From Blastocladiella emersonii ATCC 22665 (lineage: Eukaryota; Fungi; Blastocladiomycota), in assembly GCA_025594325.1 (NCBI GenBank), contig JANHCV010000008.1:1054001-1118000 (forward strand): 64,000 nt of DNA, given 5' to 3'. Within the stretch, counting starts at the first letter, position 1, and every line of letters begins with the position of its first letter. The position numbers and the translations under genes were made by a program. Below are positions 3,035-24,837 of this stretch, piece after piece. Below the pieces are notes generated by a model. The model did no database searches, was not told the origin of the DNA, and worked only from the letters and a program-made list of their open reading frames with translations.

Positions 3035-3174
3035 TGCATCAAGTTTCGTAGCGGTTAACGTTGGGAGGATTGGCGGCCTGGAGTCAGCGGTGACTTGGCG
3101 AAATGATCAACGCGGCGCGCGCGGTCTCACGCTTCTCCCTCCTCAGCGAACCGATGCAACCTCATGAAAACGAC

Positions 3175-5040: not shown

Positions 5041-5383
5041 TGAGTTGTGACGAAAACGACGAGGAAGCGGCGCGCCAACGAACGTCATGTCGAGGTTTGA
5101 TTCGAATTCGAATGGAAGACTTCAACCTTCAGGATGCCTAAAGCCGGGCTCGCTGATATCGCGTTGCACCAAGTTCGAGACCTCCAAGCTAAACAGTCCG
5201 GCAACCAGCAGCGAGGACTCGTCGACCCGAAACGCGTCCCAATTCGGTCACGTGACGGGTCACCTGATTGTTCGACGCGTCTCCCACTTTCGCCCGCGGG
5301 GAGGTTCGCCCGGTCAATTCATTAATTTACGATCACACGCTCTGATCCACATGAGATGTGATCAACCCGAAAAAAAAACTACC

Positions 5384-7239
5384 ATGAACCTGATGCAATG
5401 CAAATTAGATGTCAGCGACATACTCGAGAACATTCTCGTCCGCGCCATTCGGTCGCACGACTCGCATGACGCACGCGGCCTCCTCCAGTACACCCGCGTG
5501 CTCCCGCGCGGTCGTGCCCCCAAGGTGACTTGCCTTGCGCTGCGGCTTTGCCCCACGTTCAGCGCAAGTGCAGCGACGCGGAGCGGCACGACCGCGCTCC
5601 TTGACCTACGTCGCGAACTCAACCTCGATCTAAGTATCACCCGTGATGATCTCAAAGCCGCGTTTGACCGCGGTGACGAGACGATGCTTGCATGGTGGCG
5701 CGGATCGAACTCTCCAATCATTTCGACGATGTCCTTGACATGTGAGTTGCGCACCGCCTTCGACTTCGAGCACTCCGCTGTGGCAGGCGTCGCCCCAGGT
5801 GACGCCGAGCTCGATCGCCTAACCAGCGATATCGTATGCGGTCGTCTCACCACGATCACTATCGCAAAGAAACGGATCACACCTCACGGCATTGCGACAC
5901 TCAACAACGCGCTCCTCGCGCCGGGTCAGCAGGTGACATCGATCGCTCTCAACAACTGCCACTTTAGCACGGCTTGCGCTCTCGCTTTGCGTCCTTCAGC
6001 GACGGTTGTTCTCTTGGACCTTTCTTCCAACCCGTTCCTTGGGGCGGGCGCGACGCAGATCTTCGACACGGAGCCAGCTGTGACTACACAGGCTCCGCTT
6101 GTCAGCGAACTTCTCCTTACACGTTGCCCGTCGGCTGTCAATTTCATCGCGGCTCTCAAACCCGAGCAACTGGACTCACTTGTCGCACTTGATCTCTCGC
6201 ATAATAACTTCACTATCAGTGCGATCCAGCAGCTGATGCCCTGCTTGCCTTCAACGCTCCAGCGCCTGAATTTATCGACTTGCCTTTACGGCCCAAAGGC
6301 GATCATTGGCGTAGCCGCACACTTGCCACCAACCCTTAGCGATCTCAACCTCTCTAGGTGCCGGGTAGACATGGAGGGCACGCTTGCGCTTGCGTACTCC
6401 CTCTCTCGTTTGCGCGGGCTTCGTCGGCTCATCATGGAGCACTGCAGCTTGTCCTCGGAGTATATTACTGCCATCATTAGATGTCTTCCCGGCGGTGTCG
6501 AGCACCTCAACTTTAGTCACAATTCTTTTGGATGGCAAGGGCCGAAGCGTTTGCCTCGCGTGCTTTTCCCAAGCTCTCAACCCTCGAACTCGGCAGTGCG
6601 GAAATCGATTGGGTGGCCGTGCTTGATCTGGTGGACGGTTTCTCATCGTCCTTGACCACTCTCAAACTTTGCGAGAACCCGCTTGGAGCCCAAGGGATTA
6701 TGAAGATTCTTCGCAGACTGACGTCAATCGCGCCGCACTTCGAATCCCTTGAGCTGGCTGACGCCGAGTACTTCAAAGGCTTGAACCTGACCGAATTTGC
6801 TCGCTCTCTCCCGCCGTCGATTCGCGAGCTTTCAATCGGCAACTACCGATCCTACGAAGCAGATTTTGGCGAGTTCTTTATCTTCCTCCCACCGGGTCAC
6901 CTGAAGCGTCTTATGCTCAATACCCACGAGTTCCCACGACCTGTTTTTGACGCATTTACTCAGTGGCTGAGCGCGGCCGAGTCGCTTGTCTCGCTTAGTC
7001 TCTTTTACTGCGATCTCAAGGACCAGGAGGTAGCAATCGTCATTCACAACCTCCCAGTTTTAATCGAGTTCCTCAACCTCGACGGAAACGAAGTAAGCAA
7101 TGCGACCGTCTCGATGCTGGTCGCTGGTAATTTCCCCCGACTGACCAAGGTCACACTTCCGTACTGGAACGTTTCGGATGTCGGGATGATCAAGGCGGCA
7201 CTCGAAGAGCGCGCGACGGCCAGCTCCAGTCAGCAATAA
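5384..7239 (+). pseudogene. LRR-2, tandem paralog of LRR-1, with a frameshift near 6530
   Basis: N-terminus MNLMQCKLDVSDILENILVRAIR aligns with LRR-1 MDLMQRKLDVSEIIENLLLRAVR. The LRR register switches from ORF 5087 to ORF 6532 (AEAFASRAFPKLSTLEL matches LRR-1 AKAFAARGFTRLTSLDL). Confidence 0.8.
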
Positions 7240-7625: not shown

Positions 7626-10001
7626 TTACCTTTCCTCTGCGAGCACCCTCGCGAGCCACTCAACCACCCCCTCCCCACCCGACCCCTCCCTCTCCTCGAC
7701 CAACACATCAAACGCGAGCAACGGCACCGCCACCCCCCTCTCCGCTGCAGCGTCGCACCCCCATTCGATCCACGCGTCGACCTGGGCCGGCTGCCCCGCC
7801 CAATCGCGCGCCAACCCCCATGCGATGCGGTACCACGCGTCGCGGACCTCGTCGGCGGTGAGCACGCGGCGCGCGTGCATCTTGAGCAGCACGATCCACA
7901 GGGCGCGGTAATGGTGCGCGTCGAGCGTGACGGCGAGCTGCGCGAGGAGCTTGACGGTGCGGAGCAGGACGGCGCGGCCGGGCGGGTGGGCGGCGAGGAG
8001 CCAGTGGACGGCGGACGGGTGGACCTCGGGTACGGGTTCGGCAGTGTCGTCATCGCGGCGCCTTGCCCACCACCGCGAGTTGCGCCTCCCCGCCTCCCTC
8101 GCCGCCAGCACCGGCGCCGCGACGTCGGCGACAAACACGTTCCAGACATCCTCGAACCCGCGCTCGCGGACCTGGTCCGTCTGGAACCTCGAGGTATACC
8201 TCGCCGTCGCCCACGTCCTCGCGTGGACCGCGTACGCCATCATGAGCAGCGCGGGCGTCTCGCGGGACGTCTTGCCGTGCTGGCGCATGGCGCGGACGAG
8301 CCGCTCGGCGCGCGTGACGTGGCCGCGGCGCGCGTAGCTGCGCAGGAGCAGGTTGCACGCGACGGGGAGGACCGAGGTCGGGGACGAGGCGAGCAGGTGG
8401 TCGAGGATCGCGTGCGCGGTCGGCCAGTCTTCGCGCGCCGCGGGCGCGGCGACGGGGTCAGGGCGAGTGGTGGAGGTGGTGGTGAGGTCAACGGCGATGG
8501 AGTCGGGCGGCGGCACGTCCGGCTCGCCCGCGCCGGCGGCGCCCGCGGCGCTCGGCGCGGCGAGACACGCGTGGACGAGCCAGTAGCTGACAAACGGGCC
8601 GGGCGCGACGCCCGACCGCTCCTGCACACTCGCGAGGATCGCGGGCACGTGCGCGACGGACGGCGCGTGCATGAGCATCAGCCGCAGCGTGTGCGCGTCG
8701 GGCCGCGCGATGAGCGTGTCGAGGAGGTAGTGCGCTTTCGTGCGCTGGCCCGACCGCAGGTAGCCCTCGAGGACGGCGTTGAGGAACCGCGGGGTCCAGT
8801 CGAGCCCGCGCGCCGCGTCGACGAGGCGGTCGGCGAGCGCGCCCCAGTGCGCGGTCGGGGAGAGCGGGTCGGGCGCGGCGCGGGAGCCGGAGAGCGTGCG
8901 GTCGGGGGTGCGGACGACGCGCTCGAGGAGGAGCGTCAGGACGACCAGGTTGCGCGCGAACAGCGGGTGGATCGGGATCAGCGGTTTCGGGTCCGCGCCA
9001 CCCCCAACTGCGCCGGTCGCGGGCGCCGGGTCAACTGCAGCGGCGGCGCGCGCGCTCTCGATAAACGTCCGCGCCGCCAACACCTCGCGCGGCACCCCCG
9101 CGGTCCCGTCGCCGAGGTACACCGCCACGAGGTCCGCGGCATCGACCCAGGGGCACCGCGCGAGCGCGATCCACGTGGCCGCGTTCCACCGCCGCAGCGG
9201 GACGTGCGCGAGCAGCGCCGCGACGGCGGCCGGGTTCGGCGCGCAGACGGGCGGCCGGTTTGCGAGCGTGCGGGGCGGCGGGTCGGGTCCCATGACGGCG
9301 AGCAGGACGGCGTTGAGGTCGGCGGGCGAGACGGGGACCGCGGGCCACGGGAACCCGGCGATCGCGGCGGTCACGCGCGCGTTGGGCGAGGGGAACGCGC
9401 GGATGGTTGCGTGCACGCGGGCGACGAGGAGCGGCGGGGAGTGCGACGCGGTGACGACCGGGTGCGACAGCAGGCGGCGCGCGAGGTGCGGGTCTCCGTC
9501 CCCCGAAACGGCAAAGGCGGTGAGGAAGGGCAGGACGTGCGCGTCGATCCAGCTCTCGGCGGCGCGGCGCGGCAGACCGGCGTGCGCGAGCACGTCGAGC
9601 GCGGGCGCGAGGTGGCCGGCGGCGGCGAGCCGCGTCGCGGCGTCCGTTTCCGGGAAAGTGGCGTGGCGGCGGCGCAGCCAGCGGTACAGGGTATAGAGGG
9701 CGGGTATCTCGTCTGTGTCGTTGTTGCCGCTTCGTGGCCGTGGCGGGCGCGGCGGGATGTCGGGATCGGCGGCGGCAGCGGCGGCGAGGGCGGCGGCGAA
9801 GAGTGGCTGGTCGCGCACGGCGCCAAGAACGGCGAGGGTCAGCGCGACGGCCCGCTGGTGGTCCGCGACGTCGGGCTGCAGCGACGAGGCGTGCAGGCAT
9901 CGTTCTCGCAAAAGTGGTGGTGGCGGGCGTGGCAGCGGGGCGAGCGTGGATCGCCTCGCCGCGGCGGCTGCGAACAGTCGTCGCGCCGAGGAGAGATGCA
10001 T
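7626..10001 (-). CDS. Pentatricopeptide-repeat (PPR) protein, probably mitochondrial
   Basis: Arg/Ala/Ser-rich presequence MHLSSARRLFAAAAARRS. PPR-like helices: FLNAVLEGYLRSGQRTKAHYLLDTL and ACNLLLRSYARRGHVTRAERLVRAMRQHG. Strong GC3 bias. Confidence 0.75.
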   Translation of the reverse strand: MHLSSARRLFAAAAARRSTLAPLPRPPPPLLRERCLHASSLQPDVADHQRAVALTLAVLGAVRDQPLFAAALAAAAAADPDIPPRPPRPRSGNNDTDEIPALYTLYRWLRRRHATFPETDAATRLAAAGHLAPALDVLAHAGLPRRAAESWIDAHVLPFLTAFAVSGDGDPHLARRLLSHPVVTASHSPPLLVARVHATIRAFPSPNARVTAAIAGFPWPAVPVSPADLNAVLLAVMGPDPPPRTLANRPPVCAPNPAAVAALLAHVPLRRWNAATWIALARCPWVDAADLVAVYLGDGTAGVPREVLAARTFIESARAAAAVDPAPATGAVGGGADPKPLIPIHPLFARNLVVLTLLLERVVRTPDRTLSGSRAAPDPLSPTAHWGALADRLVDAARGLDWTPRFLNAVLEGYLRSGQRTKAHYLLDTLIARPDAHTLRLMLMHAPSVAHVPAILASVQERSGVAPGPFVSYWLVHACLAAPSAAGAAGAGEPDVPPPDSIAVDLTTTSTTRPDPVAAPAAREDWPTAHAILDHLLASSPTSVLPVACNLLLRSYARRGHVTRAERLVRAMRQHGKTSRETPALLMMAYAVHARTWATARYTSRFQTDQVRERGFEDVWNVFVADVAAPVLAAREAGRRNSRWWARRRDDDTAEPVPEVHPSAVHWLLAAHPPGRAVLLRTVKLLAQLAVTLDAHHYRALWIVLLKMHARRVLTADEVRDAWYRIAWGLARDWAGQPAQVDAWIEWGCDAAAERGVAVPLLAFDVLVEEREGSGGEGVVEWLARVLAEER

Positions 10002-10625
10002 GGCAGAGTGTGGTATATCGTTGCGTGCGTGAGGGATGATTCGCGGAGACGACGACGAACAGCACGTCGTTTGGATCGGCCATTCGGCGTCACCTGACCG
10101 CACGCCACGCGCCATGAAACCCATCCCGATACGCGGATGGCCGCCGAATACGTCAGCCCGGGCTGCCGCTGATTAATAATAGGAGCCGCCTGTAACGCAG
10201 CGCGCTGGCTTGCCGTGTCTTGGCTGCGGTCGCGGCGGTGGGGCCTGCGACTTGTTCGGATGCGCAGCTCGCCGATGGCAGAACCCTTGCCGATGGAGAG
10301 TTCTTCCTTCTCTCTCCCCCTGGACCACCCATCGCAGACAATCAAGCGGCAACAGTAGAGGCAGTAGAGTCGTCACCATCGCCGCGAGCAACGGACCCGG
10401 GAGACAGAGACATCGCGTCACGTTTCCCCTCCATCGCCGCGTCGCCGCCATCCCCGCCGCCGACCCGCCGCCGACCCTCGTACCGCAACGTATCACCGCC
10501 CGCCGCAACTGCGTGCACTGCGCCCGTCGTGCCACGCGCCGTCCATCGCGCGACCCGACTCGCTCGACTGCCACGCACTGCACTGCGCGCGCCGCGCCAC
10601 TCGCCCCATCAACCATCACCCGCCG

Positions 10626-12269
10626 ATGACCTCGACTCAACAACAACCACCACGCATGGCCGACCACGGCCGCCGCCGCCCGCCCGCCCTCGCCGTCGGC
10701 GCAGTGCTGTCGCCGACCCCGCGCCGCCCGCGCGCCGCGTCCGCCGGGTCCGTCGCGACCCTGCACCTGCCGCACCCGTCGCCCTACTCGGCCGCGGTGC
10801 CCTCCTACGTCGCCGTCGACGTTCCCCCACCGCCACTACCTCTCCCCCAACCAACCGGCACGCCGTCGCCCCTCGCGCTCGCGCGGTCGCGGTTCCGCGC
10901 GTTCCGCCGCGCGCCGTGGCCGACCGCGAGCGCTTTTATCGGAGCGTACCCGCTGGCGCACTCGCGGCGCGACGTGGTGCTGACGGCGGTCGCGTGGACC
11001 TACTTCTCGGCGTGCTCGTTCGTGACGTGTCTCGCCAACTCGACCGCCGACCGCATCAACCCCAACAACCTGGTCCCCGTCGCCGAGCGCCGCGTGCTCG
11101 TGGACGCGGGCATGACGTACCTCGCGTCCGTCTACGAGACGTACGTCAGCGGGCCGCGGGATATCTCGGACTGGTTCGTGCGCCTGTGCGCGGTCCTGAT
11201 GGTCACGCGCGCCGTCCTGTCGGGTCCGCGCGCCGCGACGGTCCTGCGGCGTGCGTGTTACGTCGGCGGGACCATGTACCTCCTGCGCGCGCCGACCGTG
11301 CTCATGACCGTCTTGCCGAACCCGCTCGTCGCGTGCGAGTCGCACCCGGACCCGTCGCTGTGGCGCGACGCGGTGCAGCTCTTCTTCCAGCGGCGGTTCT
11401 CGTGCGGCGACGTCTTCTTCTCGGGCCACTCGATCGTCTTCGTCACCGCCGGCCGCCTCTGGCTGCGGTACGGCGCCAACCCGCTCGCCCGCGCCGCCGT
11501 CGCTTTGGTCACGTTCGCCGCCGTCACGTCGCTCGTCGCGTCCTCGTACCACTACTCGATCGACGTCTGGATCGCGTGTATCTTGACCTCGCTCGTCTTC
11601 TCGCTCTACCACTGGACCGCCGAGGGCCGCATCGGCGCCGGCACCTGGTGGGGCGACCTGGTCACGTTCCTCGACGCCGACGAGGCCTTGCGCGCCGCCG
11701 CGTGCCGCCGCGCCGCCCGCGCCTACGCGTGCGTCCTCCCCGCTCGCAACGCACCGCGGCGCGGCCCGCAGCGCCGCACTGGCGGGTACGCGCAACTCGA
11801 CGAGGAGGAGGTCGACCTGGAAGAAGACGATCTCCCACCATCCTACGCCTCCGTCTGCGACTCGTGCGCCGCGTGGTGGCCCGCTGCGAAGATCCCGCCA
11901 ACCCATCGCCGCCGCCCGCGCGCCGAGTCCACCGACTCGATCCCGACCACCGACGCGTCATCAACGGCGACCGCACGCGTGCACCCGATCCCCGTCATCA
12001 CCGCCGCCAAGCCCAACGACAACCTGCGCGTCGCGGCAAGCGTACCCCACACGCAGCAGAGGATGTCGCAGAACCGACCGCGCGTCGTCGTTGGCGGCGG
12101 CGTGGGCGGCGGGCTCTCGGCGCCCGCCGAGTGGAGCCCGCGGCTAGTGGTCGAGCGCGGGGATAGCGGCGCGTGGGATGGGCCGCCGCGAGCGATGAGT
12201 GGGGAGGGGGAAGAGGGCGAGGTTGGGGAGTGGTTGTTTGGGCAAGAAGAGGAAGAGGAGAGTGAGTGA
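10626..12269 (+). CDS. Sphingomyelin synthase / PAP2_C-family membrane phosphotransferase
   Basis: Several TM segments. Motifs CGDVFFSGH and HYSIDV match the SMS D3/D4 catalytic motifs. Intact 547 aa ORF, head-to-head with the PPR gene. Confidence 0.85.
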   Translation: MTSTQQQPPRMADHGRRRPPALAVGAVLSPTPRRPRAASAGSVATLHLPHPSPYSAAVPSYVAVDVPPPPLPLPQPTGTPSPLALARSRFRAFRRAPWPTASAFIGAYPLAHSRRDVVLTAVAWTYFSACSFVTCLANSTADRINPNNLVPVAERRVLVDAGMTYLASVYETYVSGPRDISDWFVRLCAVLMVTRAVLSGPRAATVLRRACYVGGTMYLLRAPTVLMTVLPNPLVACESHPDPSLWRDAVQLFFQRRFSCGDVFFSGHSIVFVTAGRLWLRYGANPLARAAVALVTFAAVTSLVASSYHYSIDVWIACILTSLVFSLYHWTAEGRIGAGTWWGDLVTFLDADEALRAAACRRAARAYACVLPARNAPRRGPQRRTGGYAQLDEEEVDLEEDDLPPSYASVCDSCAAWWPAAKIPPTHRRRPRAESTDSIPTTDASSTATARVHPIPVITAAKPNDNLRVAASVPHTQQRMSQNRPRVVVGGGVGGGLSAPAEWSPRLVVERGDSGAWDGPPRAMSGEGEEGEVGEWLFGQEEEEESE

Positions 12270-13072
12270 TTGCAGAGGAGTAATTTGATATCGCGTTTCT
12301 TCGCAACTCGATGAAAGAGAGATTATCGCCTGGATCATTGCAGCGAGCAGACAGGTCCCGCTGAGCGCGATGGTCGTCGCTTATGGGCTGGCGGCTTCGT
12401 CCTACAACAACCGGTTGCACCCTTGCCCTCGCTCCGCGCTTAATGAAAAGGCGACTGCGTCGCTGAGCTGCGGATGCGCTTCCATCTCAAGCCCAAAGAA
12501 ATGGGAGACAAAAATGCGACCACGCCAGCCCGATTCCCCAGTTATGGAATGGATCCCAAAGTCGGTCGTCCTGGGTCAGCGTGTTCTCGCCACTCGATCT
12601 TTGCGGGGCTGATGTGACTACGCGTGGACGCGTGCAAACGGGCACCGGCGCCCGTGGCGCGACGCGTGCAGCCGCGCAAGACGCGCGTCGAACATAGCAC
12701 GTGATGTCTCGCGCCTCGGCCGTGATTCGTGACTACCGATGGGGTTTCCTTGAGTCCCCGGCTGCGGCCGCCGTCAACGCACGCGAAGCGGCCTGCGCTG
12801 CTGCCTTCACTCCTGCCCCTGCCGTCCCCGATCTGGATGCCCCGTTCCCATCAATGCGCCAACTAGCGGTGGACATGCTCGTAACTGGCTCCTTGATCGT
12901 CAAAACCGACCCATGGAAGCGCCTCGCCCGGTTCCAGGCAGACGAGCGGGGCGCAGCGCGAGTCCGCAGCCCAGAACCGTCCCACAACCGCGGTCAGCGC
13001 CGCGCCGAGCATTCCACGGTCCCCGGCCGCGACCCCGAGACACGACTTCGCGTGCCCGATCGCTGCTCAAAC

Positions 13073-16000
13073 TGCGGTAAGAAAAAGGTGGACCAAATGA
13101 ACCCCGCCGCGGAGGCCGAGATCCAAGCTCCGTGCAAGCCTTGCAAATCCGGGCCTTGCGAATTTGCGGCCAATTTACACGGTTTGGAGGCAAATTTTAA
13201 ACCTGAGGAAATTTGCATCAAATTGAACGGCGGCCCGCGGGTCGGCTCGGACAGCGAATTTGCAACCAATTTGTGTTCAATCTGCTGCGATTTGATGGCA
13301 GATTTGATGGCCAATTGGCGAGGCGAGCGATCCGGTTGGCGCACGAATTGATGGCATATTCTCAAGATGGGGACTGCGCTTTGGTGCTTATTTGCGAGTG
13401 TATTGCGTACAAGGGAGATCTCAGATACAGGTCAGGGCGCCGCCGCCGCGGGTCGCACGGCGTGCGAGTCGGAATCCCGGCCCGTGCGCGACGACGATGC
13501 ACGACAACCAGGTACCCGAGCGGACCGCAGACGCCGTCGCCAGCACCAGGCCTCCGCACTCGGAGCCGCCGCCCGTGACCCGAACCGCGTGCGCGTCGCA
13601 CTTGCTGCGATCCGCGGTCAGGTCGCGCCGCGACCCCGAGTACAGAAACCGGCTGGGCGAGATGGTGGTCAGAGATCGCTGCTACAAGCAAGAAAGGTCC
13701 AAGAGCTCATGTGAGTCGCGCTGCGCCTCGAGCGGCGTGTGACGAGGGCGTACCAAGTCGTCTTAGGAATCGGCACCCTACAGCTTGCGGATCTTGCTCG
13801 TCAGATGGGCCATCGAGAGGTGGCGGGTTGATGGTGCAGCGAGAGACCAGTGGATCACGAGGGGCTACGAGGAGCAATGTGAGCGAGCATGTCAGTCGCG
13901 CGCCAACTCTTGCGCAGCGACGAAAAGTGTCGAGCGTACCTGCGACTGGGACTTGACGCACGCGGTGGGCGCGGCCGAACCGCTTGAGCGAGCCCGTCGG
14001 CGCTACTGGCGCGAGCGCGTGGCGTGAGCACATACAGCAGGCGCAAGTGGTGTGGTGTTGACGGCGTACCGTCGCGCGCGATGCTGGCTCGATGGTCTCA
14101 GGTCCATGAGTCGCCAAATGTTGAGTCCCTGGTGGCGGACGCGCGCCGGCGGCTACATGGGCACCGCACAGGTGTCAGCACCTTTGATGAGCGCGCACGC
14201 GGCTGGTAGCCCGGTGGGGTCCACCTGCGCTGCGCCGTGCCGCACCCGAAGCATGAGCGCGGGGGAGCGCGCGCACGACGGCGCGCACGCGTAGCGGCGA
14301 CGACGCCGCTGGTCTCACGGTGCGTCGACCGTGGAGCGAGCAGTGGATGACGCGCACCACGCCGGGCACACCGCTCCGAAACCGCAACACGACGGTCGGC
14401 GCGATGGGAGCCAAGCGCGCGGCGGCGGCCGCGGCGGAGCGGAATGACGCGTACCTTTTGACGGTGGCCGCATGAATGCCGTGCGTCGAGGTCGCAGTGT
14501 GCTTCGTTGTCGGATGGGTGATACATTGCAGCGAGTGGTGATGAGTGAGGGAGCGGGGACCGCGCGCGGCGTGGCGAAGAGTCACTCGCTCGGCCGACGC
14601 GCGCTCGCGCTCACGTCCACGCCAACCTGTGTCACGTGCGCGTGACCGACACGTGTTTTTGCGACGCGTCTCGCAGCCCGTCTCGCAACCCGCCGTGCCA
14701 CGACTCTCGCTCAGTTTCGCTAGCCTTGAAACGCGCGGTTAAAAAAAAAACGACAAACTGCACTTGAAAGCAGGACTGCGAGGGGAGGAGGGAGGAACTG
14801 GCAGGGCACGGCGCGTTCCGGGTCGTGACGCGGCCGCGCGGTTACCCCCTTTGTTCTCGAGTTGATGAAAGCTTAGAATTTGGTTAGGCTTTGGAGCGAC
14901 GAGCCCCTTGTCATGACAGTTGTAAGCACATCGCAGCAGCCGGATCGTACCGCAGCTCACGCGAGGTTCTCAGGCGATCCTCAAAGGTCATTCATCGACC
15001 TTTGAAGGGAATCTTGCGCCTGAACGAGCACGCAGGCCAAGCGTGAACGGACGTGGCCAACGTGGCCCTGCGGTGGCGTCGGACGATGGAGTTCACACGC
15101 CTGCCACAGTTCACTCAGTTGCTCCCTCCACCTTCCGGGCATTTATTACGTATGCTGCAGATACCCCTTGATGCAATGTCTTAAACCCATGGACTTATTT
15201 CAAATTGCGCTTAGTTTATGTCTTCTTGCGCGATTCGAGCGCCGCGCCGAACCCGTAACACAGGCAACGCCAGCCGCTGACGAGCCGCGCCTGTCGCTCC
15301 AAGCGCATCAGAAGTCATGTCCGCTTTTGATTGGACCGCCGGAAGCTTCAGCTAGTTGATAGGACCGCTCGCCAAGTCGGAGACCCGCCCTTGAGTGACG
15401 AACAGAATGTCGCCTACTGATCCATGACTCTACCATGAAGCTGTAGACGTTCACGTCGCGTTTCAGCTCTAAAGGCGCCGCGTGGCAGATAGTGAAGCTC
15501 GATCACGGGGTGTTACATGCTCTACCAGCGTCAGAGGCAGCTCGAGCATGGCCGTTCCGCGACCCTGTGTTCAAGCAAAGGAATAGCACCATTCGCAACT
15601 CTCTGAAGTGGCCTTCGATGCGTTCCAGGCGATTAATCGCACCGACTGGATTGCATGCACCTCATTCAAGTCTGGAAAGATTTGCAACGTGCCGGTTCAG
15701 CGCCGTGGACGTGCTTCACTGGTTGAGCGACTGTCCCGCGCGCTCTCGCAGAAGCGCTGACATGTGAGCAAGCTATGTACCAGGGCTCACCAGCTTTACT
15801 CGAGGCTGGCAATTGTTGTCCATTCGTGCTCGCGGAAGCGGTTCACTCGCTCGCTCTCGTCAACTTGTACGAGTCAAACCAGTATGCGATCACGTTCAGA
15901 CAGTTGTTGGAAAGCTCCGAACTCTTCTTGGCCGCTTTGCTTGCCGCGCCGGTAGGTGTCCACCTAATAAGCTCGATCCGCGAGCGCGATCCGCAACAGC

Positions 16001-16658
16001 ATGCGTGCCGCAAACCCCTTCAGGCGAACATAGGTTTTGCCCTCTTTAAACTGCAATCTCGGCCAGGAAACCAAGTTTATTTACCGAGGTAGAGGTAGTT
16101 GACCAGTTTGCCGCCAGGAGAAAGCCTGTTTACCCTCTGGATTGGATGCTGTACTCGATTTGCGACCCCATGAATTCAAACAGTGTCTATCGTTTCCGTG
16201 CTCCTCTGAGCGCTAAATCTATTTCCGCGAGTCACATCCTTCACTCCGTTGCGCAGGAACGACTTTCGAGGTTAGCTTCTCGAATCAACCCCGGCGGTGT
16301 GTTAGCGTTGAGAATCCGATCGCCATTTTTTTCTCGACACCCGGCTTCCAACCACCCCAACGCTTAATTAGCTCTTTTGTAGCTCTCACCACGATCAGTT
16401 CATCACCGTCGAGAACAGGGCAATCGACTGAGCCGTTGTGGTGAAAAGTCCAACTTTCTCCAAGGGCAACTCCGACCACCGCGACCACCAGCGAAAAATC
16501 CCCCTGACCTCCCCCATCACACTCATGTATTGCATTGAACGGAAATCTTTATTTGCGATTTCGACCCTCGCCCGACCCGGCCCAAGAATTGAGTGCAAAT
16601 TTGCAGCTGGCCGCACAATTTGTGATCCGCGATTTCCGATGTTCTCCCTCTCACGGCT
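13073..16658 (+). mobile_element. Candidate ~3.6 kb TIR DNA transposon (element 3), degenerate relative of elements 1 and 2
   Basis: GCAAATT/AATTTGC motif arrays at 13140-13350 and 16550-16630. Internal CACGTG..GCGACGCGTCTCGCA motif (14650-14675) is shared with elements 1 and 2. Ends are degenerate (TGCGGTAAGAAAAAGG; TCACGGCT). Confidence 0.5.
15300..16530 (+). pseudogene. Decayed transposase remnant (CMC/EnSpm- or Plavaka-like) inside element 3
   Basis: Fragment VKLDHGVLHALP..WPFRDPVFKQRNSTIRNSL resembles the KxH..H..GP..FE..N..IR catalytic-end motif. Many stops and frameshifts. Confidence 0.4.
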
Positions 16659-16859
16659 CCTGTAAACGTGATCGCGCGCTGTCGAGCCCGCTGCAGTCGC
16701 CGCACATGCTCAATATGGCCGAGTGCGCGTTCCAGCAGTTCGACGAGCACGAGAATGCCTGCTGCCCGCCTCGCTCGCCGCGCCGTCACCGAGGACAACC
16801 AGGCCTCGTTCCGCCGTTTCAGCGTTCCCGCGCTCGCTACCGGTGTGTTACTACCAGGT

Positions 16860-17460
16860 CGGCGAGGCCAGTGCTTGCGGCCGCGCTCCCTGCGAGCCTG
16901 AACAGAGTCGACTTGCGCGGCAACTGGATCAGCGACCCTGCCGCAACCAAGATCGCCGACCGCTTGCGCGAGCCGCTCTTCGAGCTCAATTTTCAGCCAA
17001 CGCGGTTGGTGATGCCGGTGACGCGCCCATCAAGCAGAAACCGCTCGTGTCCGTCATGATGACGTTCTTCCTTGGCCGCAAGCTGATCTTCGACGCCGGC
17101 ATGCGCGCGCTTGGGGAGCGCCAGCGCGCGGTGTTCGCGTACCATCCTGCACCTTGGCGGCGGCGGCCAGGTTACGGACACGGGCCCGCACGCGCTTGGC
17201 GAGTCCCTGCCCGCGGCGCTCGCGCATCTCGGCCTCTCGTTCAACCCGAGCGTCGCCGCGGGGACGTCAGCGATCGCGTGCAAGCTGCTGCCGTCGCTGA
17301 GGACATCTGATATATCGAACAACGTGGTCGGCGACGACAGGGCCTTGCTCCTCGCGGCCGCATTACCGTGGGCCTCTAGCGGCTGGCCCTACACGCAAAC
17401 CGGATCGGCGCGACGGACTTGGCAGTGATCGCACAGTACCTCGGCGCGACGCTTTTTGTC
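16860..17460 (+). pseudogene. Heavily decayed RNI-type LRR gene fragment
   Basis: Fragments in changing frames: LPASLNRVDLRGNWISD, LPAALAHLGLSFNP, LPSLRTSDISNNVVGD, LALHANRIG. Confidence 0.7.
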
Positions 17461-17835
17461 CCGCGCAGCTCGGAAGGAAACGGATTGCGAACATGGTCAG
17501 CGGGGTGGCTGAGATGCTGTCTCGTTGCTCTTGCACCTTGGCCTCGGCGTGTGTAATCTTGGCGACACGAGCGGGTCTCCGGTCTCTGTGCGGCTGTGCT
17601 GAAGCTGATACAAATCGAGGTCGCTGGTAGCGCGATAGGGGACACGGACACGCTAGGTGTTAGAACCGAACTTCAGGGCGGGTCGCGGGTATCTAGTAAG
17701 GTCACCATCGTTTTAATGGTTCGGTCCGCTCAAGGTGCAAGACGCGAGGCGGAATTCATGCGTCACTTTCGTTCAGCACGGTAAAGCTTTGAACAGTTCA
17801 ATTTATTCACATGTACGCGTGCAATCACCACCCAA

Positions 17836-19731
17836 TCAAACCTCAACCTTTTCGGCCCACGCCCTGAACTCGGGATGGTAAGACAGGCGCGCCTGCCCAA
17901 TCAGGACGCTCCGAACCTCTGGATCAACCATGACGGGACCGTCCCACATCGCGCGGAGCAGCGCGAGGCGCGCATTCGCGTCTGCACCGAGTAAGAAACG
18001 ATGCCCAAGGTCGCCTGACATGACCCACGGTTCGCCGCGCAGCTTTGTCACCTTGCTGGCAAACTCGGGGATGCGAGCCGGATCGAACGCGACGATCGAC
18101 CCAATGACGAGAAGCATGTGAAGTCCGTGGCCGTTGACGCCGTGCGTGTGCGCGTCGCGCGGGTGGCCCGTCAAGTCGAGATCCGAAGCAGGCGTGACAA
18201 CGTCAATGAGCCGCTGGATTTGATCGACTGAGGCTGAAGCAAGGATCGACCGCCAAGTTGAGCCTCGGAAAACTCGGGCGTGGCGTGCGTCTGCCTGCAG
18301 TTCCCGTGAAGCAGTCGCGTACCTGGCATAGGACTCGAGCCAAGCAGATGGCGGAAGCGGCGAAGTGCGCCACACCCAGGGACCTTTATTGCTCGCAGCA
18401 GAGTATTCAGCTGAAACTGGACACCAAGGGAGCCGCTCCATCGCAGCAACGACGAGATCGGGATCACAAATCCCGTCAAAGACTCTGGAAAAGGCGCTGG
18501 GCGGGCGGCCGTCCCAGGGCTCGATCCAACGAAGATCGCGCGCGTAAGCGTCAAGGACTGGGAGCGAATCGACGGGCCGCATGCGGGCGATGGGGTATTC
18601 GTGCCTGCTATCGCAAACCAAAAAAAGATCGCAAGTTTGCCAACAGACCACACGGCCCGAATTGAGCAAGCTGTGTACAGCATCCAGCTGTTCGCGCATT
18701 CGAGTCGTCTCGTACTCGTCGTGCAGCGGGAAAAGCGTCTCAATTCGATTGCGCACCGAGTCCATGCCATGCGTGATCTTGAAATGGTCCTTGACCTGGC
18801 CGAGCACGGTAAACTTGGTTGAAACATCATCAGCAATCTCGCCGCCGCGGTTCGTGTAGCTCTCGTGCTCGGCCGAGAGAAGTATCAAGTCCATGGCAAC
18901 GCACGGCCGCGGGGCATCGGGCATTCCAAACGACTCGCGGCGCAAGGCATCGAGTGCCATCCCGAGGAGAAATGTGGCGCTGAAAGAATCGGCGTGGTCG
19001 ACATTATTGTCCAGGGCACGTGTTCCGTCCGTAGCAAGATGTAAGAGGAACTTGAGGCAGAAAGCGCGACCCTGGCGCAGCACGCCGCGCGCGGCCATGT
19101 GTACGAAACATTTGGTGAACAAGAGGGCCCCGTACTTGAGGAACAGAATCTGCGTCTGGTGAGCTGGCTGGCGCGGGTCGTCGAAAACGTCAAGCTCGGC
19201 AGACCGCGACCGAAGCATCGCCGCAAGTCTGGATCCATGCGAAAACCGCAAATAACTTGTCTCATTCAATCCCGTCCAATTGAGCAGGACGCGGCAAAAT
19301 GCCGACGGAACGCGCGACTGGGAAGCAAGGATCAAAAGATCCTCTTCTTGGGCGACGGTCAACGGCCACGAGCTCTCGGAAACGGTGACCGACCATTCGC
19401 CGAGCTCGGTCCATCGAGTATCGTCGACGTCCGCATTTAGCCGCACCAGCGCTCGGGCCAGGGCAAGGAAGTTGGTCGAGTGATCATCCGGGTGTTGTTC
19501 GTACTGGCAGTGACGGATCGGGGTTGGTGCAAGTTGGCGGAAATCGTCAAAACGGCCGCCAAGCAGCGGGAAGACGGCCTGCAGCCAAGGGCGGACTGCC
19601 CACAGCGACGGCTCGGCGAGTGCAGCGCGGCAAGTCGCACGAAGGGCGAGCGCAGAAGGAACATCGAGGAGTTGTGCAATGGCGCACTGAAGCTCTTGCG
19701 GCAAGTTAAATAGCGTGAGGGCTTCGTTCAT
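17836..19731 (-). CDS. F-box-like domain protein with uncharacterised C-terminus
   Basis: N-terminal LFNLPQELQCAIAQLLDVPSALALRATCR is an F-box pattern; intact ORF of about 630 aa. Confidence 0.7.
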   Translation of the reverse strand: MNEALTLFNLPQELQCAIAQLLDVPSALALRATCRAALAEPSLWAVRPWLQAVFPLLGGRFDDFRQLAPTPIRHCQYEQHPDDHSTNFLALARALVRLNADVDDTRWTELGEWSVTVSESSWPLTVAQEEDLLILASQSRVPSAFCRVLLNWTGLNETSYLRFSHGSRLAAMLRSRSAELDVFDDPRQPAHQTQILFLKYGALLFTKCFVHMAARGVLRQGRAFCLKFLLHLATDGTRALDNNVDHADSFSATFLLGMALDALRRESFGMPDAPRPCVAMDLILLSAEHESYTNRGGEIADDVSTKFTVLGQVKDHFKITHGMDSVRNRIETLFPLHDEYETTRMREQLDAVHSLLNSGRVVCWQTCDLFLVCDSRHEYPIARMRPVDSLPVLDAYARDLRWIEPWDGRPPSAFSRVFDGICDPDLVVAAMERLPWCPVSAEYSAASNKGPWVWRTSPLPPSAWLESYARYATASRELQADARHARVFRGSTWRSILASASVDQIQRLIDVVTPASDLDLTGHPRDAHTHGVNGHGLHMLLVIGSIVAFDPARIPEFASKVTKLRGEPWVMSGDLGHRFLLGADANARLALLRAMWDGPVMVDPEVRSVLIGQARLSYHPEFRAWAEKVEV

Positions 19732-19927
19732 GGTATGTATTGCATGGCAGGACGGGGCGGCGTGGGAGCGCGAACCGGAACGCGCCGTTTTCCGTTCGCC
19801 GCCTCGACTCGCCCGCTCCCTCTCCCCTCGGCGCACCACCGTGCCGTGTTTTGAATGTAACCCCATGCATTGATCTCAGCTGCCTCGTCTTATGTGAGCC
19901 TCTGCCGCGGTCGCAATGTTGGTGAAA

Positions 19928-21304
19928 TCAACCCTCCCGCTTGAGCTGCTCGATCGCCGCCCACAACGCGCCCAAGGCCCGGACACACACATCTCGCGGG
20001 ACCTGTTGCACAACGCCGAGGAACTTACGTGCGTTGGCCGCTTCAGCCGCGCCCAAGTCGCTGCCCCTCGCACGCTGCGATAACACTGTTCTGGCACCCG
20101 CCGTGGCCCGGATCAGATCTTGGAGTTCCATAGACAGTGGAGCTGGGAGTGTCACATGAAGCGCGCGATGGGCATTCACAATGGCGCGAGCGTGCGGGCC
20201 GACGTTCATAATCTCGCGGCACCGCTCAGTTGAGTGCGTACGGCTCTTGCGTTGTAGGTGGGCGCTCCGGGAGCAGAAGTCGCACGTAGGGCTTGGTATC
20301 GTTGGAAGAGCACGCACAGGTGTTGGGATGATAAGCGGCACGGCCACGGGCGCGGCGGGAACAATCACGTCGCGCAGGGATAGAGCCATGGACTCGATTG
20401 TCTCAGTCGAATTGGCAATGTGGAGGGTCAGCGGCGACAAGGCGAGGCCAAACGCATTCCGCAGCTTGGCGTAGAACATGTGCTTGATATGCCGCTGCGC
20501 TTTGAACTCGGGTGTGATCGGGACCACCTCGCCCGCCGCCCGACAGAAGCACACGTAAAAGCTCCACACTGTCTCTTTTGGTGCCGCTGCGACGGACAGC
20601 CAGCGCTGCTTCCACTCTGTCATCCATATTGGGTTCGCGGCGTTGAGGAAGATGCATCTCACTTCGTCGTCATGGGCTTCGGTCAACTGGTCGCTGAGAA
20701 AGAGCGCGTAGACCAAGTACAACTGCGGTTGCACGTTGGCCCGGGCGGCGATGAGTAGCGTTGCAAGCGGGACACCTGGGACCTGTCGCGCAAGGAGATC
20801 GAGAAAGTCGGCGGCCGTTGTGGCGACCGGCTGGTACGCGTTGCTTCGGATGAGACGCTCGTAGACTGGTCCCCTGGTACGCAAGTACTCATAGAGCTGC
20901 GTCGGAGACGACAAGGACAGTTGGCGAGGCGGTGCGTGAATTGGAAGCGACGTCGGGCGAGCGGGAAGGCGCACGGAAGTCGAGAGCGGGGCCGCGCGGG
21001 GAGTCGCTGGCGGCGAGATCGGTATTGCGGTGGATGGAACTGTTGTTGGCAACTGCTCTTGCACATGTTGTAACTGAGAAGATTGGTCAACGCGGCCGCC
21101 AAGTCTCCCGCGCAAGTACTCTCCAATTCGGTGCAGCCGATGCGATAGGGTGGATAGAAGCGGGTCGGGACAAGCAAGCTGGCGGCCCTCCGCCGACTCG
21201 GGAGCTTGACGCGCCGCTGCGAAATAGCTCGTCGCGCCTGACGAACAAGCTCGTTTAAGCTCACTGGATATATTGCATAGAGTCTCATCATGTGGGTGCT
21301 TCAT
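19928..21304 (-). CDS. Gag-like protein 1 (helical capsid-like core + CX2CX12HX4C knuckle)
   Basis: Intact 458 aa ORF. Core ADFLDLLARQVPGVPL..WKQRWL..PKETVWSFYVCF and knuckle CDFC-x12-H-STER-C; homologous over its whole length to 21432 and 53989. Confidence 0.6.
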   Translation of the reverse strand: MKHPHDETLCNISSELKRACSSGATSYFAAARQAPESAEGRQLACPDPLLSTLSHRLHRIGEYLRGRLGGRVDQSSQLQHVQEQLPTTVPSTAIPISPPATPRAAPLSTSVRLPARPTSLPIHAPPRQLSLSSPTQLYEYLRTRGPVYERLIRSNAYQPVATTAADFLDLLARQVPGVPLATLLIAARANVQPQLYLVYALFLSDQLTEAHDDEVRCIFLNAANPIWMTEWKQRWLSVAAAPKETVWSFYVCFCRAAGEVVPITPEFKAQRHIKHMFYAKLRNAFGLALSPLTLHIANSTETIESMALSLRDVIVPAAPVAVPLIIPTPVRALPTIPSPTCDFCSRSAHLQRKSRTHSTERCREIMNVGPHARAIVNAHRALHVTLPAPLSMELQDLIRATAGARTVLSQRARGSDLGAAEAANARKFLGVVQQVPRDVCVRALGALWAAIEQLKREG

Positions 21305-21431
21305 GGTGGTGGGACCTTTGGAAGGCTAACGAACGCGGGTTAGAGTCGGCAGCCAAATGAGCGACGCGCCCCGTTTCGGATACCGCTCCTCACAAACGCC
21401 TTCCTCAGCAAACAGTTGACGGTACATTCTT

Positions 21432-22760
21432 TCATTCTCCATGAAGTTGCTCAACTTTCAACCAAAACCGGTGCACAACGTCATCGCGCACTACACGCGG
21501 CAGGTGCAACAGCGTGTTGAGGAACGCGGCCGCGCGCGCCACTATCCCGCTCCCGCTTCCAGTCAGTGAGTGCGGCGTGGAGAGCTCCCGCGCAATGACC
21601 GCAGTGAGATCCAGCAACCTCGATCGTGACATTCCACGACCCGCGCTGGGCAGCCGCGCGCGGCCAATCTCGCGGTATGCAGCAATTACGGCGCGCGCGT
21701 GCGGGCGCATGTCGTCCAGCTCGGGGCACCGGGCAACCGAGTGTCGCTGGCTCGTGGCACGGAACCAGTCGCTCTGGTTGCAGAAGGCACAACCCGGCGC
21801 GAGGGAGGAGTGGGATTGTGCAGCCACCGCTGTGCTGCCGCGCGGCGCGGAAGAGGGAATCACCACGTCACGAAACTGTGCGACCATGGAATCAAGGCTT
21901 GCATCCCGCGAAGCGACGTGCGATGAGAGCAAGGCGACCGGGGTGCCGAGCGCGCCATACAGCCGGTTGACGAACACGTTTTTGATATGCCGCTGTGCCT
22001 TGAACGCGTTGTCAACGACGGCCACATCGCCCAAAATGCGGCAGAAGCGGACGTAAAATGCTTCCACAGTCTCGCCCGGTTCGGGCATCGTCGCGAGCCA
22101 CCGCTCCTTCCACTCGGACATCCAGTTCGGATCGGCCGCAAGAAGGAACAAGCGCCGCGTCTCGCGATCATCCGTCATCGACTCACGAAGGGACACAGAG
22201 TACACGGCGTACAGATCCTTGCCCACATTCGAGCGCGCAGAGAGCAGGAGCGCCGCGAGCGGGACACCGGGCACCACGCGGGCGAGGAGGTCAACGAAAT
22301 CGGACGCCGACCGCGCGATCGTCTGCCGTTGGCGGCTCCGCGGGTGTCGCAGGTAGAAGGGCGCGTTGGAGCGGAGTTTCTCGAACAGGCCCGTGTCGTA
22401 TGCGTGATTTTCGTAAAAGAGCGTGGGAGCGGAGGCGGGTTGCGGAGGTGGCAGCGGTGCGACGGGCGAAAGCGGCGGTGGCGGGAGCTCGGCAGAGATT
22501 GTGGCGGACGACCCTGTCACGGAAAGAGCACCTCGCTCGGCGCGAGGCGGATCGACCACGGAACGATCGATCCGCTCTCGCAAGCGGTCGCGGATGCCCT
22601 GCAGCCGTGCTTCCATGGCGAGCTGGATCAGGCCGTGTTCGACGAGCGAGGCGCTCGGCACATTTCGGACAGAATCAAAGGAGAGCGCCAGGTTCCGCGC
22701 AGTGCTCAGTTCATCGTTGGTTTGCATGTTGCAGCGAGTGATTTCATGGTAGTAGTCCAT
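21432..22760 (-). CDS. Gag-like protein 2, tandem paralog
   Basis: Intact ORF from MDYYHEI. Core SDFVDLLARVVPGVPL..WKERWL..PEPGETVEAFYVRF and knuckle CAFC-x12-H-SVAR-C. Confidence 0.6.
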   Translation of the reverse strand: MDYYHEITRCNMQTNDELSTARNLALSFDSVRNVPSASLVEHGLIQLAMEARLQGIRDRLRERIDRSVVDPPRAERGALSVTGSSATISAELPPPPLSPVAPLPPPQPASAPTLFYENHAYDTGLFEKLRSNAPFYLRHPRSRQRQTIARSASDFVDLLARVVPGVPLAALLLSARSNVGKDLYAVYSVSLRESMTDDRETRRLFLLAADPNWMSEWKERWLATMPEPGETVEAFYVRFCRILGDVAVVDNAFKAQRHIKNVFVNRLYGALGTPVALLSSHVASRDASLDSMVAQFRDVVIPSSAPRGSTAVAAQSHSSLAPGCAFCNQSDWFRATSQRHSVARCPELDDMRPHARAVIAAYREIGRARLPSAGRGMSRSRLLDLTAVIARELSTPHSLTGSGSGIVARAAAFLNTLLHLPRVVRDDVVHRFWLKVEQLHGE

Positions 22761-23489
22761 GGTGCGGCACGCCTGAGAGTGAGCGGTTTGCGGCAAGCGA
22801 TGTGCAGTGATCTGGCCCGCGGCCGCCCGGGAGACGCCCACACGTGGCAACAAGAGCGCCGCGTTTCAAAAGACCGCGCAAACGCCTGTGCAAACGGCCC
22901 GGCCATGGCCTTCAAAGTCGCGTCCCTGTGGCGGGCAACGGGCGGTGATTGGGGACAGCACGGAATCGAGGGCGAAAGCCCTCTTTCTAGACCGCATCGC
23001 GGCCGGATAGGCTGCCGACGCTCACGTGAGCATGTCGCCCTCTCGTCATGTGAATGTCCTCAAAACGCGTGACAGACGCGCCGTTTGTCATGTGATCGCT
23101 GTGGCGCAACGCGTCCTGGCCGTGCACGTGATCGGCCTCGGCTCAACCCCCGGAAGCGCGTCGCTTGACGCTGTTCCGCTCGGCCATCGCGGAACGTTTA
23201 ACGCTTTGCACCGACCCTCGACCAGGCCCGCGAGACTCCGAGCACATGAAAGCGTGAGAGATGCAGAAGCGCGGTAAGCCGCTAACGGAGCCCGTGCTTG
23301 GCGTGCGTGTTGGAAAACGGAGCCCGTGTTCGGTGCACATCCTTAAACGACGCGGTTCACCTGGGAGCCGCTAGCGCAGGCTCGTTGACGTGGGCGCGAG
23401 TTCAACGGTTGCACGGAGAACGACCTGCGAGGTCCCATGAACGTGAGTTCGAGTGAGGACTGCGAGGTCGAGAGATCCGCTCTTTGAGT

Positions 23490-24190
23490 TGCGGTCCGTT
23501 ACACGGACGGGTCGCTCCGTGGCTTGGGTTTGCCAGACGTTGCAGCGGGCGCCAACATCTTCGTGAGCGGATCGCTGGAACTCGCTGTTCGCGTGGGTGC
23601 GGGTCCGCGCAACGTGCTCGCTCGAGTGGGCCGTGCTCCGCTGGATCATCGCGGCCCGCGAGTTCCAGGTCGAGTGGGTCCATGGCCACGCCGTGAACTT
23701 GGAGAATGAGGAGGCTGACGCGCTCGCCAATAAGGGCTGCCGCGCATCTCCCGCTGTGAATCGCCGCCGCCGTCCGCGCGGACCTCGATGCGCCCTTCAA
23801 GGCGCGCAGGCGCGGCTGCGACTTCAACTCAGTCCCGCGACGCGCTCTCCGCCGCCTGCACGACGCGCGACACGACCCGCTGCTCTCTCTGACCGCGTCC
23901 GCTGGCATCACGTCCTCCCCCATCGATGTCCCAGCCCTTGTCACTGCGCTTCGGGGCAGCACGCGCCGCATCCACCCGAGCGAGTCCCTCACCGCGAACT
24001 CGCTCCCGTGCTTCCAGCTCCGCGCGCTCGCAGGCCAGCTGCCGACCCGCGGCTGTTTGCACCAGCTCCGGCCGCACCGCTACGAGTCCCCCAACTGCGC
24101 TGAATGCCCAAAAAGCTGGCGGCAAGGTCGCCGACACTCAAGCGTACGCGTTTGAGTGCACACTCTTCGCGCGCAATCGTCTCCGCGGCA
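23490..24190 (+). mobile_element. 5'-truncated, decayed LINE relic: RNase H remnant + zf-RVT-like C-terminus
   Basis: YTDGS at 23500 and VEWVHGH..NEEADALA at about 23670-23730 are RNase H motifs. FQLRALAGQLPTR..LHQLRPHRYESPNCAEC..DTQAYAFEC is a non-LTR ORF2 zinc-finger motif. Frameshifted. Confidence 0.75.
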
Positions 24191-24570
24191 CTGGACGACG
24201 TCCGCATCGTAAACGCCCTCGCGGCGGTCGACAAGGGCTAGATCGGGGGCAGGCTCCGCACCAGCGTCACCGGATCGCTCGCGGCGAGCGCCTTCTCAAC
24301 CCAAAACAGCGTGACCGCCATTGTGGACGCACCACTCGTCGCGTGGTTCAAACAGCTTTACTGAGACAAACTCATCGATCTACGCCTCGCGCTCCTGCCG
24401 CGACGGCCATCGCCTCGAGCGCCATGCAGGAACTTGCTTGGCGCCCTCGCTGCAGCGCGATTGCTGATGCCGCGCCGGTGACACATGACGGCACTCAACG
24501 CGAGCGACCAACCGCACCATCCTTTGTTGAAGCGCGCGCATCGCGCAGCAGGGGAACGCGCTGTGCTGTG

Positions 24571-24774
24571 ACGCGCAAAGCTGCGACGCGCAAAGCTGCG
24601 ACGCGCAAAGCTGCGACGCGCAAAGCTGCGACGCGCAAAGCTGCGACGCGCAAAGCTGCGACGCGCAAAGCTGCGACGCGCAAAGCTGCGACGCGCAAAG
24701 CTGCGACGCGCAAAGCTGCGACGCGCAAAGCTGCGACGCGCGAAGCTGCGACGCGCGAAGCTGCGACGCGCGAA
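24571..24774. repeat. 15-bp minisatellite (ACGCGCAAAGCTGCG)n
   Basis: 11 identical units, then 2 ACGCGCGAAGCTGCG variants and one partial unit; no spacers. Confidence 0.97.
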
Positions 24775-24787
24775 ACGGCTCAAGCGC

Positions 24788-24837
24788 CCAACGTGGCGCG
24801 GACTTTAGCCCTCGATTGAAAACCAGACGCGAAACGT
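24788..24837 (+). repeat. Copy of a small dispersed ~50 bp element (also 40393-40447 on +, and partially 35590-35620 on -)
   Basis: CCAACGTGGCG..TTTAGCCCTCGATTGAA(A/G)ACCAGACGCGAA(A/G)CGT is shared with 40393-40442. Confidence 0.8.

Follow-up and report, generated by a model that had tools for sequence, protein, structure and literature searches.

Blastocladiella emersonii ATCC 22665, a zoosporic fungus, carries a large family of stand-alone, intronless genes whose products combine an all-helical core with a single zinc knuckle, and which probably derives from the gag gene of a retroelement. Three members lie in a stretch of 64,000 nucleotides (contig JANHCV010000008.1, positions 1,054,001-1,118,000), hereafter the window, where an earlier note had singled out three minus-strand open reading frames (ORFs) as Gag-like genes and candidate domesticated capsid genes. 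The family is real and lineage-restricted, so far known from B. emersonii only, and its coding sequence is under moderate purifying selection. We put the probability of descent from Gag at about 60%. It is the best single explanation since retroviral capsids head structural searches of two libraries, two Pfam hints agree on one stretch of the core, and the core is followed by a linker and then the knuckle.

The three ORFs are present where the earlier note had placed them:

19928-21304, minus strand: G1, an intact ORF of 458 amino acids (from the ORF list, paralogy and alignments)
21432-22760, minus strand: G2, an intact ORF of 442 amino acids from its first ATG
53989-55752, minus strand: G3, a divergent member of 587 amino acids

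Searching the window with each protein by tblastn returned exactly these three copies. G1 and G2 matched each other at 1e-65, and G3 matched G1 and G2 at 1e-11 to 1e-14; scores in this range are far beyond chance, so the paralogy is real and the three ORFs form one family, as had been claimed. An ORF call with a TTG start extends G2 to 22853, and the ATG at 22760 is its likely start because it aligns with the N-terminus of G1 (M-x3-H-[DE]-x-T-x-C-N). The true start of G3 may be an internal methionine, Met56 or Met59. No Pfam family matched G1, G2 or G3, and scanning the window with Rfam and for tRNAs gave nothing.

The family proved far larger than the three copies seen in the window. We sampled the window together with eight further loci of the same contig, spread from 0.19 to 1.30 Mb and amounting with it to ~240 kb in total (labels such as L001, L003 and L006 denote fetched loci with their own coordinates). 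A scan of all stop-to-stop ORFs in this sample with a hidden Markov model of the family matched 65 segments, corresponding to roughly 50 copies. About half of these are full-length single ORFs of 380-650 amino acids; the remainder are truncated or interrupted by a frameshift or stop. Most copies run head-to-tail on the same strand, with seven in an array at 1.15-1.18 Mb and ten or more in another at 1.28-1.30 Mb, and all known copies lie within ~0.19-1.30 Mb of a single 1.8-Mb contig.

When 1.84 billion representative proteins, metagenome proteins among them, were searched exhaustively with a family profile, by local alignment without a length filter and therefore with coverage of fragments and fusions, 15 matches were returned. 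The fifteenth was a low-complexity match. The 14 true relatives are all hypothetical proteins from the genome annotation of B. emersonii ATCC 22665, encoded on one contig of 1,801,506 bp (H9P43_006651 to 006885), which makes up ~5% of the 34.27-Mb assembly. A general centromere repeat was rejected as an explanation for the copies given that the annotated ones all sit on one contig. GC content and the F-box/FNIP repeats had raised the idea of a Pandoravirus or Acanthamoeba origin, which was rejected because database matches assign the window to B. emersonii. Most copies in the sampled loci are uncalled in the GenBank annotation, among them G1 and D1, the F-box gene downstream of it (annotation of window 12270-22269), and some annotated copies are chimeric spliced models: P0001 (L001 10001-13458) joins three cores, and P0004 (L006 10001-15141) likewise fuses neighbouring copies. 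With most copies uncalled or fused in this way, the compartment that holds them is invisible to protein-based surveys. Neither G1, G2, G3 and D1 nor other ORFs of the window had an identical entry in the protein database; the one exception was the PAP2_C gene, an exact match to a protein of this contig. A word-indexed protein search gave no match for G2, one family member for a profile of the core (A4) and none for a profile of the knuckle and C-terminal region (A5); this search is insensitive for the family, as the A4 run missed known members.

Intact members share one architecture. A short amphipathic helix at the N-terminus is followed by a disordered linker rich in proline, serine and arginine, an all-helical core of ~185 amino acids, a second disordered linker, a single zinc knuckle with four ligands and a family-specific domain of four helices. 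Alignments of G1, G2 and G3 bear out the N-terminal helix, the Pro-rich linker and the conserved C-terminal helix that had been described for them. The elements map as follows:

21113-21145 (G1), 22581-22613 (G2) and 55417-55449 (G3), minus strand: N-terminal amphipathic helix motif, which recurs in many relatives in the family alignment
20363-20917, minus strand: helical core of G1, the candidate capsid-like region (amino acids 130-314, from model secondary structure and Foldseek)
20546-20581 (G1), 22044-22079 (G2) and 54928-54963 (G3), minus strand: Gag-like motif P-[GK]-E-T-V-x2-F-x3-F
54464-54635, minus strand: tandem DNA repeat of 12/18 nucleotides encoding the Arg/Ser/Ala-rich insert of G3
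20219-20284 (G1), 21726-21791 (G2) and 54298-54363 (G3), minus strand: zinc knuckle C-x2-C-x12-H-x4-C
19931-20218, minus strand: family-specific C-terminal four-helix domain of G1 (model helices 240-328)

The Arg/Ser-rich insert of G3 sits between core and knuckle. Several relatives also have RS-rich inserts, some of them encoded by short tandem DNA repeats, and in a few the insert replaces the knuckle. For the C-terminal domain, no relative was detectable when the A5 profile was run against the protein database and PDB sequences.

Of the 40 ORFs that cover the knuckle, 35 retain all four zinc ligands. These are near-invariant in the A5 alignment, whereas the intervening residues are free to change and loop length varies. 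The earlier note had described the knuckle as novel, with the same 2-12-4 spacing in all three genes. The spacing is indeed identical in G1, G2 and G3, but it is not fixed across the family, and the pattern has a precedent in MYST acetyltransferases, whose known C2HC motif is Cx2Cx12Hx3-5C (PMC2556858). The central loop of the 35 sites with ligands ranges from 11 to 18 residues and is never 4 (x11 in 2 ORFs, x12 in 20, x13 in 7, x14 in 4, x16 in 1 and x18 in 1), and the H-x4-C arm is retained at all sites except one. The position after the core and the ligand order C, C, H, C with x2 and x4 arms both fit a nucleocapsid knuckle. From the invariant arms and expandable loop, we would infer a stretched retroviral-type knuckle more readily than a classical finger.

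To compare the core with known folds, residues 130-458 of G1 were modelled with AlphaFold. A first model built on a four-row alignment reached a pLDDT (predicted local distance difference test) of 52 and gave meaningless Foldseek matches, and was discarded; with a 32-row alignment (A3) the pLDDT was 90.9. In this model the core (model residues 1-185) consists of a helix, a short hairpin and about eight further helices, and is followed by a disordered Pro-rich linker, the knuckle (C212, C215, H228 and C233) and four helices. Against the PDB, Foldseek ranked the capsid of the human endogenous retrovirus HERV-K HML2 first (E 0.44) and that of human T-cell leukaemia virus type 1 (HTLV-1) second, and retroviral capsids, including those of bovine leukaemia virus (BLV) and maedi-visna virus (MVV), accounted for 13 of the top 50 matches. 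Against BFVD the first match was a deltaretrovirus Gag (E 0.074, probability 0.89, 266 columns), and Gag proteins of delta-, lenti- and epsilonretroviruses again accounted for 13 of the top 50. The capsid and Gag alignments span 170-266 columns with E values of 0.07-3 and probabilities of 0.47-0.89. When ~30 members were compared with Pfam one by one, ~16 sub-threshold matches were obtained, two of them to Gag families: Retrotrans_gag in a single member (E 0.025, 15.2 bits against a cutoff of 24.1) and PNMA in a single, different member (E 0.033, 14.1 bits against a cutoff of 25). Both fall on one stretch of the core, around W..RWL..P.PGE[ST]V..F..RF.

Neighbours within an array share 20-65% amino-acid identity and still have open frames. 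For the five closest pairs, which are 49-65% identical in amino acids, the Nei-Gojobori method puts the ratio of nonsynonymous to synonymous substitution rates (dN/dS) at 0.28-0.49, below the value of about 1 that the earlier note had named as refuting its reading. Old neighbours that remain open at such ratios indicate constraint acting in place.

The arrays appear to have grown by copying of DNA. The clearest case lies around G1 and G2 themselves:

19400-22961, no strand assigned: block of 3.56 kb that runs from the upstream region of G2 through G2 and G1 into the first 150 codons of the F-box gene after them

A second copy of this block lies ~85 kb away on the contig, with 100% identity. 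At one edge identity drops abruptly to ~80% inside the F-box gene, and at the other similarity stops at 22961. Two genes duplicated together with their spacers at 100% identity argue for growth by DNA copying; judged from its sequence, the block looks like the signature of a recent segmental duplication or of gene conversion between arrays, not of retrotransposition, and an assembly artefact is possible. A maximum-likelihood tree of 28 cores contains well-supported subfamilies, and two-gene blocks recur within one array. Copies group by locus on the tree, with 13 label changes compared to 17.9 in shuffled data, and none of 200 shuffles was as low. G1 and G2 fall in the clade of a neighbouring array, and the nearest relative of G3 is a copy at L004 (P0005), ~720 kb away.

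The genes between and beside the copies include several other multi-copy families. The principal features are:

17836-19866, minus strand: D1, F-box protein gene of 676 amino acids directly downstream of G1 across a 61-bp gap, with a weak Pfam F-box match
L001 11-1369, 3171-5054 and 17982-19490, and L003 11160-12993: further copies of the F-box family
52316-53944, minus strand: D3, leucine-rich-repeat (LRR) gene directly downstream of G3
23450-23740, plus strand: decayed, frameshifted RNase H fragment upstream of G2 on the opposite strand, not a member of the family
L008 14526-16931 (minus), L003 3927-6917 (plus) and 850-2016 (minus), L009 4973-6190 (plus) and 20479-20957 (minus), and L006 15893-17161 (minus): virus- and transposon-type genes

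The N-terminus of D1 (LPQEL...I...L...LRATCR) is an F-box conserved in three copies, and a gag-pol frameshift from G1 into the ORF downstream was rejected on the ground that this ORF is the F-box protein. Members of the F-box family (~630-680 amino acids) often adjoin copies of the G family, in either orientation. At least five LRR paralogs of the RNI/LRR_6 type, FNIP-like, occur on both strands of the window (3103-4593, 5087-6655, 46268-47947, 52316-53944 and 60862-61683). The RNase H fragment matches Pfam RNase_H with E 3.9e-5, below the family cutoff. It is followed by an ORF at 23926-24819 (plus) containing a 15-nucleotide tandem repeat (24511-24810) that encodes (KAATR)n, and the same RNase H and repeat element is present inside another G array (L006 13786-14445) at 62-92% amino-acid identity; the element (23450-24819) probably represents a retroelement's 3' end.

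PIF1-like helicase ORFs occur in the window (36842-40256, plus strand, seemingly split across two frames) and at L001 20736-21826 and L005 20328-20942. A Helitron context was considered for them and set aside, the PIF1-like ORF having no Helitron-type Pfam match. The window also holds a 794-amino-acid ORF with C2H2 zinc fingers (41452-43836, plus) and, ~1 kb downstream, a partial paralog with 44% identity (44916-45740, plus). An orphan multi-copy family without a Pfam match (26-40% identity) is distributed along with the arrays (33958-35265, plus; 956-2176, plus; L004 6531-7127). Among the arrays there are also a D5-like superfamily 3 (SF3) helicase (DUF5906, E 7.6e-18), a UL9-like origin-binding helicase, FNIP repeats, a Plavaka transposase, a Harbinger DDE_Tnp_4 transposase and a weak integrase core. 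Host-type genes (PAP2_C, chitin synthase and P450) are interspersed. With its virus-type, transposon-type and orphan genes, the 1.1-Mb stretch stands out as a distinct compartment of mobile-element or virus flavour, and endogenised viral DNA or giant mobile elements may form part of it.

Several results weigh against Gag descent. No Foldseek match to Gag is significant: the best E is 0.074, template modelling (TM) scores are at most 0.29 and root-mean-square deviations are 11-17 A, values that may in part reflect rigid superposition of a multi-domain model. Unrelated helical proteins appear among the same matches, as all-helical models attract weak ones. A fold comparison such as the earlier note had called for placed capsid and Gag proteins best in both libraries, none of them significantly. 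Both Gag matches in Pfam are sub-threshold, each was seen in one of ~30 members, and they stand beside comparable noise to unrelated families; profile searches of PDB sequences returned no Gag. The Gag-like motif that had been noted is a similar stretch in all three window genes (PKETV..FYVCF in G1, PGETV..FYVRF in G2 and PGQSL..FDIRF in G3), yet G1 departs from it and the wider alignment keeps it well in only part of the family. The family knuckle lacks the canonical nucleocapsid x4 loop (C-x2-C-x4-H-x4-C), and no pol-linked relative that could be the ancestor was found in the window and the eight loci. The non-significant matches, the unrelated helical proteins among them, the profile searches of PDB sequences and the patchy motif would suit a lineage-specific helical zinc-binding family without any link to Gag, in which the capsid likeness is generic and the knuckle is an independent C2HC-type site of a kind that exists outside Gag. 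We take this alternative seriously but consider it unlikely, in view of the fact that capsid and Gag proteins of several genera rank at the top and take roughly one in four of the first 50 places in each of two independent libraries, that the two Gag families among the Pfam matches converge on one stretch, and that helical core, linker and CCHC site follow each other in the order of capsid and nucleocapsid. In addition, no Pfam zinc-finger family, MYST type included, matched any member scanned.

Alternatively, the copies might be the gag or ORF1 of a non-autonomous or decayed selfish retroelement, their frames open from recent activity and not from host function. The family is multi-copy and mostly uncalled in GenBank, about half of its copies are broken, and debris lies nearby (the RNase H fragment, the weak rve match and the Harbinger and Plavaka genes). 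The G+C content at third codon positions (GC3) of the G genes is 0.60-0.74, similar to that of neighbouring multi-copy orphan families (0.60-0.77), compared to 0.90 in housekeeping-type genes of the window (PPR-like and PAP2_C, 7626-10124 and 10626-12269), which lie in a stretch of 70-75% GC. We consider this reading very improbable. No long terminal repeats (LTRs), direct or inverted repeats or poly-A-type ends were seen bracketing the copies in the window; neither reverse transcriptase nor protease was found in the called and long uncalled ORFs of the eight loci; and none of the ~50 copies examined is joined to a reverse transcriptase, protease, integrase or LTR, which upholds and widens the earlier observation that pol and LTRs are absent beside the window copies. 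A helicase gene and a distance of 5.7 kb separate the one weak rve (integrase) fragment from a broken copy. Confinement of all annotated relatives to one contig, head-to-tail order, duplicated blocks that carry spacers and neighbouring genes along, and constraint on old neighbours likewise speak against it. A further alternative, improbable in our judgement, is that the family is part of a large DNA virus that became endogenised, or of a giant mobile-element compartment, as one of several paralog expansions of the sort found in giant viruses, whatever the ancestry of its fold. It draws on the D5-like, UL9-like and PIF1-like helicases, the FNIP repeats and the expanded F-box and LRR families of the 1.1-Mb stretch, on its mostly intronless, closely spaced orphan genes with GC3 below that of host-type genes, and on the integrated giant viruses documented in the related genus Allomyces (PMC13533422). 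Against it, no major capsid protein, PolB or packaging ATPase was present among ~50 ORFs scanned, where the D5-like and UL9-like helicases were the only such genes seen, a scan that was not a systematic hallmark search; host-type genes are interspersed; the stretch exceeds 1 Mb; a scan of viral contigs with G1 was empty; and the Mycodnaviridae paper (PMC13533422) does not mention Blastocladiella.

Returning to Gag descent, we propose the following course of events. A retroelement gag gene encoding capsid and nucleocapsid would have lost its pol partner and then been amplified as DNA, by tandem duplication, block duplication and gene conversion, into arrays whose members turn over by birth and death while moderate purifying selection acts on them. 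To judge from the model, the core may self-associate as capsid proteins do, and the sequence of the knuckle and the basic RS-rich linkers suggests that they could bind nucleic acid. The expanded, fast-diverging repertoire might act on the particles or RNAs of retroelements or viruses, for example by co-assembly and poisoning, and the family proteins would not build an infectious particle of their own. By analogy, we would favour such a conflict-type role, interference of the kind known from Fv1 or Ty1 p22, over an Arc-like carrier, because the tandem repertoire is large, diverges fast and lies beside F-box and LRR expansions. How the proteins act is inferred more weakly than their Gag descent, and capsid formation, RNA carriage and restriction activity are purely conjectural. 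The full scenario, in which a retroelement capsid gene gave rise to tens to hundreds of diverging capsid-like zinc-knuckle proteins, encoded in tandem on one chromosome next to expanded F-box and LRR genes and serving as adaptive decoys or restriction factors against retroelements or viruses, or as particle-forming RNA carriers, is tentative, and taken as a whole we think it rather doubtful.

The closest comparison is with co-opted gag genes of the Arc/PNMA/RTL type, which the family resembles in being stand-alone, with a capsid-like helical core, no pol and purifying selection. Co-opted gag genes have significant Gag-profile matches and orthologs across families of species, whereas the B. emersonii family has neither: no ortholog was found in another species among the 1.84 billion proteins. 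It also differs in its extra C-terminal domain and long-loop knuckle, and its tandem arrays amid mobile-element and virus-type genes contrast with conserved single genes of the Arc/PNMA type. With no orthologs and such an array setting, domestication of that type is at most tentative. The proposal that these are exapted Gag genes thus holds as far as they are stand-alone and under purifying selection, and goes beyond the evidence where it would need a significant Gag match or orthologs. In sum, the family is stand-alone and constrained, without a Gag-profile match, a canonical knuckle, a pol linkage or orthologs; it is a variant of co-opted gag if Gag descent holds, and an orphan family otherwise.

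Among viral proteins, the orthoretroviral capsids (HERV-K HML2, HTLV-1, BLV and MVV) are the best-ranked structural neighbours of the model, and in orthoretroviral Gag the knuckle likewise follows the core. Unlike that Gag, the family lacks a matrix domain, protease and pol, and has a single knuckle with an x11-18 loop compared to x4. The MYST C2HC motif shares the ligand order and, with the x12 sites (20 of 35), the spacing (PMC2556858); the family differs in its variable loop of 11-18 residues, the absence of a zinc-finger Pfam match and the other protein context. The SCAN-domain zinc-finger genes of vertebrates likewise combine a capsid-derived helical module with zinc binding and occur in tandem clusters (summarised in PMC8321522). 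In the B. emersonii family, unlike in SCAN proteins, the whole core is accompanied by one CCHC site, and no sequence relation between the two was detected. SCAN represents only the C-terminal lobe of the capsid, fused to C2H2 arrays and KRAB domains. Gag-derived restriction factors are known from mouse (Fv1), Ty1 (p22) and sheep (enJS56A1), each comprising one or a few genes with a known target. They serve here as an analogy for the proposed particle interference, and copy number is far higher in the B. emersonii family.

Only three co-opted gag genes of fungi, all single-copy and all in Dikarya, emerged from a survey that covered more than 740 eukaryote families (PMC8321522), compared to ~50 or more copies in tandem arrays of a zoosporic fungus here. 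A preprint on STORM describes domesticated totivirus-like capsid genes in a four-gene tandem array of yeasts (bioRxiv 10.64898/2026.05.24.726934). Both systems have capsid-type genes arrayed in tandem in a fungus, and they differ in that the B. emersonii family has tens of genes and a retroviral-type resemblance, whereas STORM derives from a capsid of a double-stranded RNA virus. If the full scenario above held, it would represent an array-based, large-scale use of Gag of a kind undescribed in fungi. If Gag descent alone is correct, zoosporic fungi would have their first reported family of capsid-derived genes, and fungi as a whole their largest tandem expansion of them. Capsid genes would then be seen to multiply as plain DNA arrays and to diversify like immune-gene families, and B. 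emersonii, a laboratory model, would provide tractable capsid-like proteins from nature that carry an unusual zinc site.

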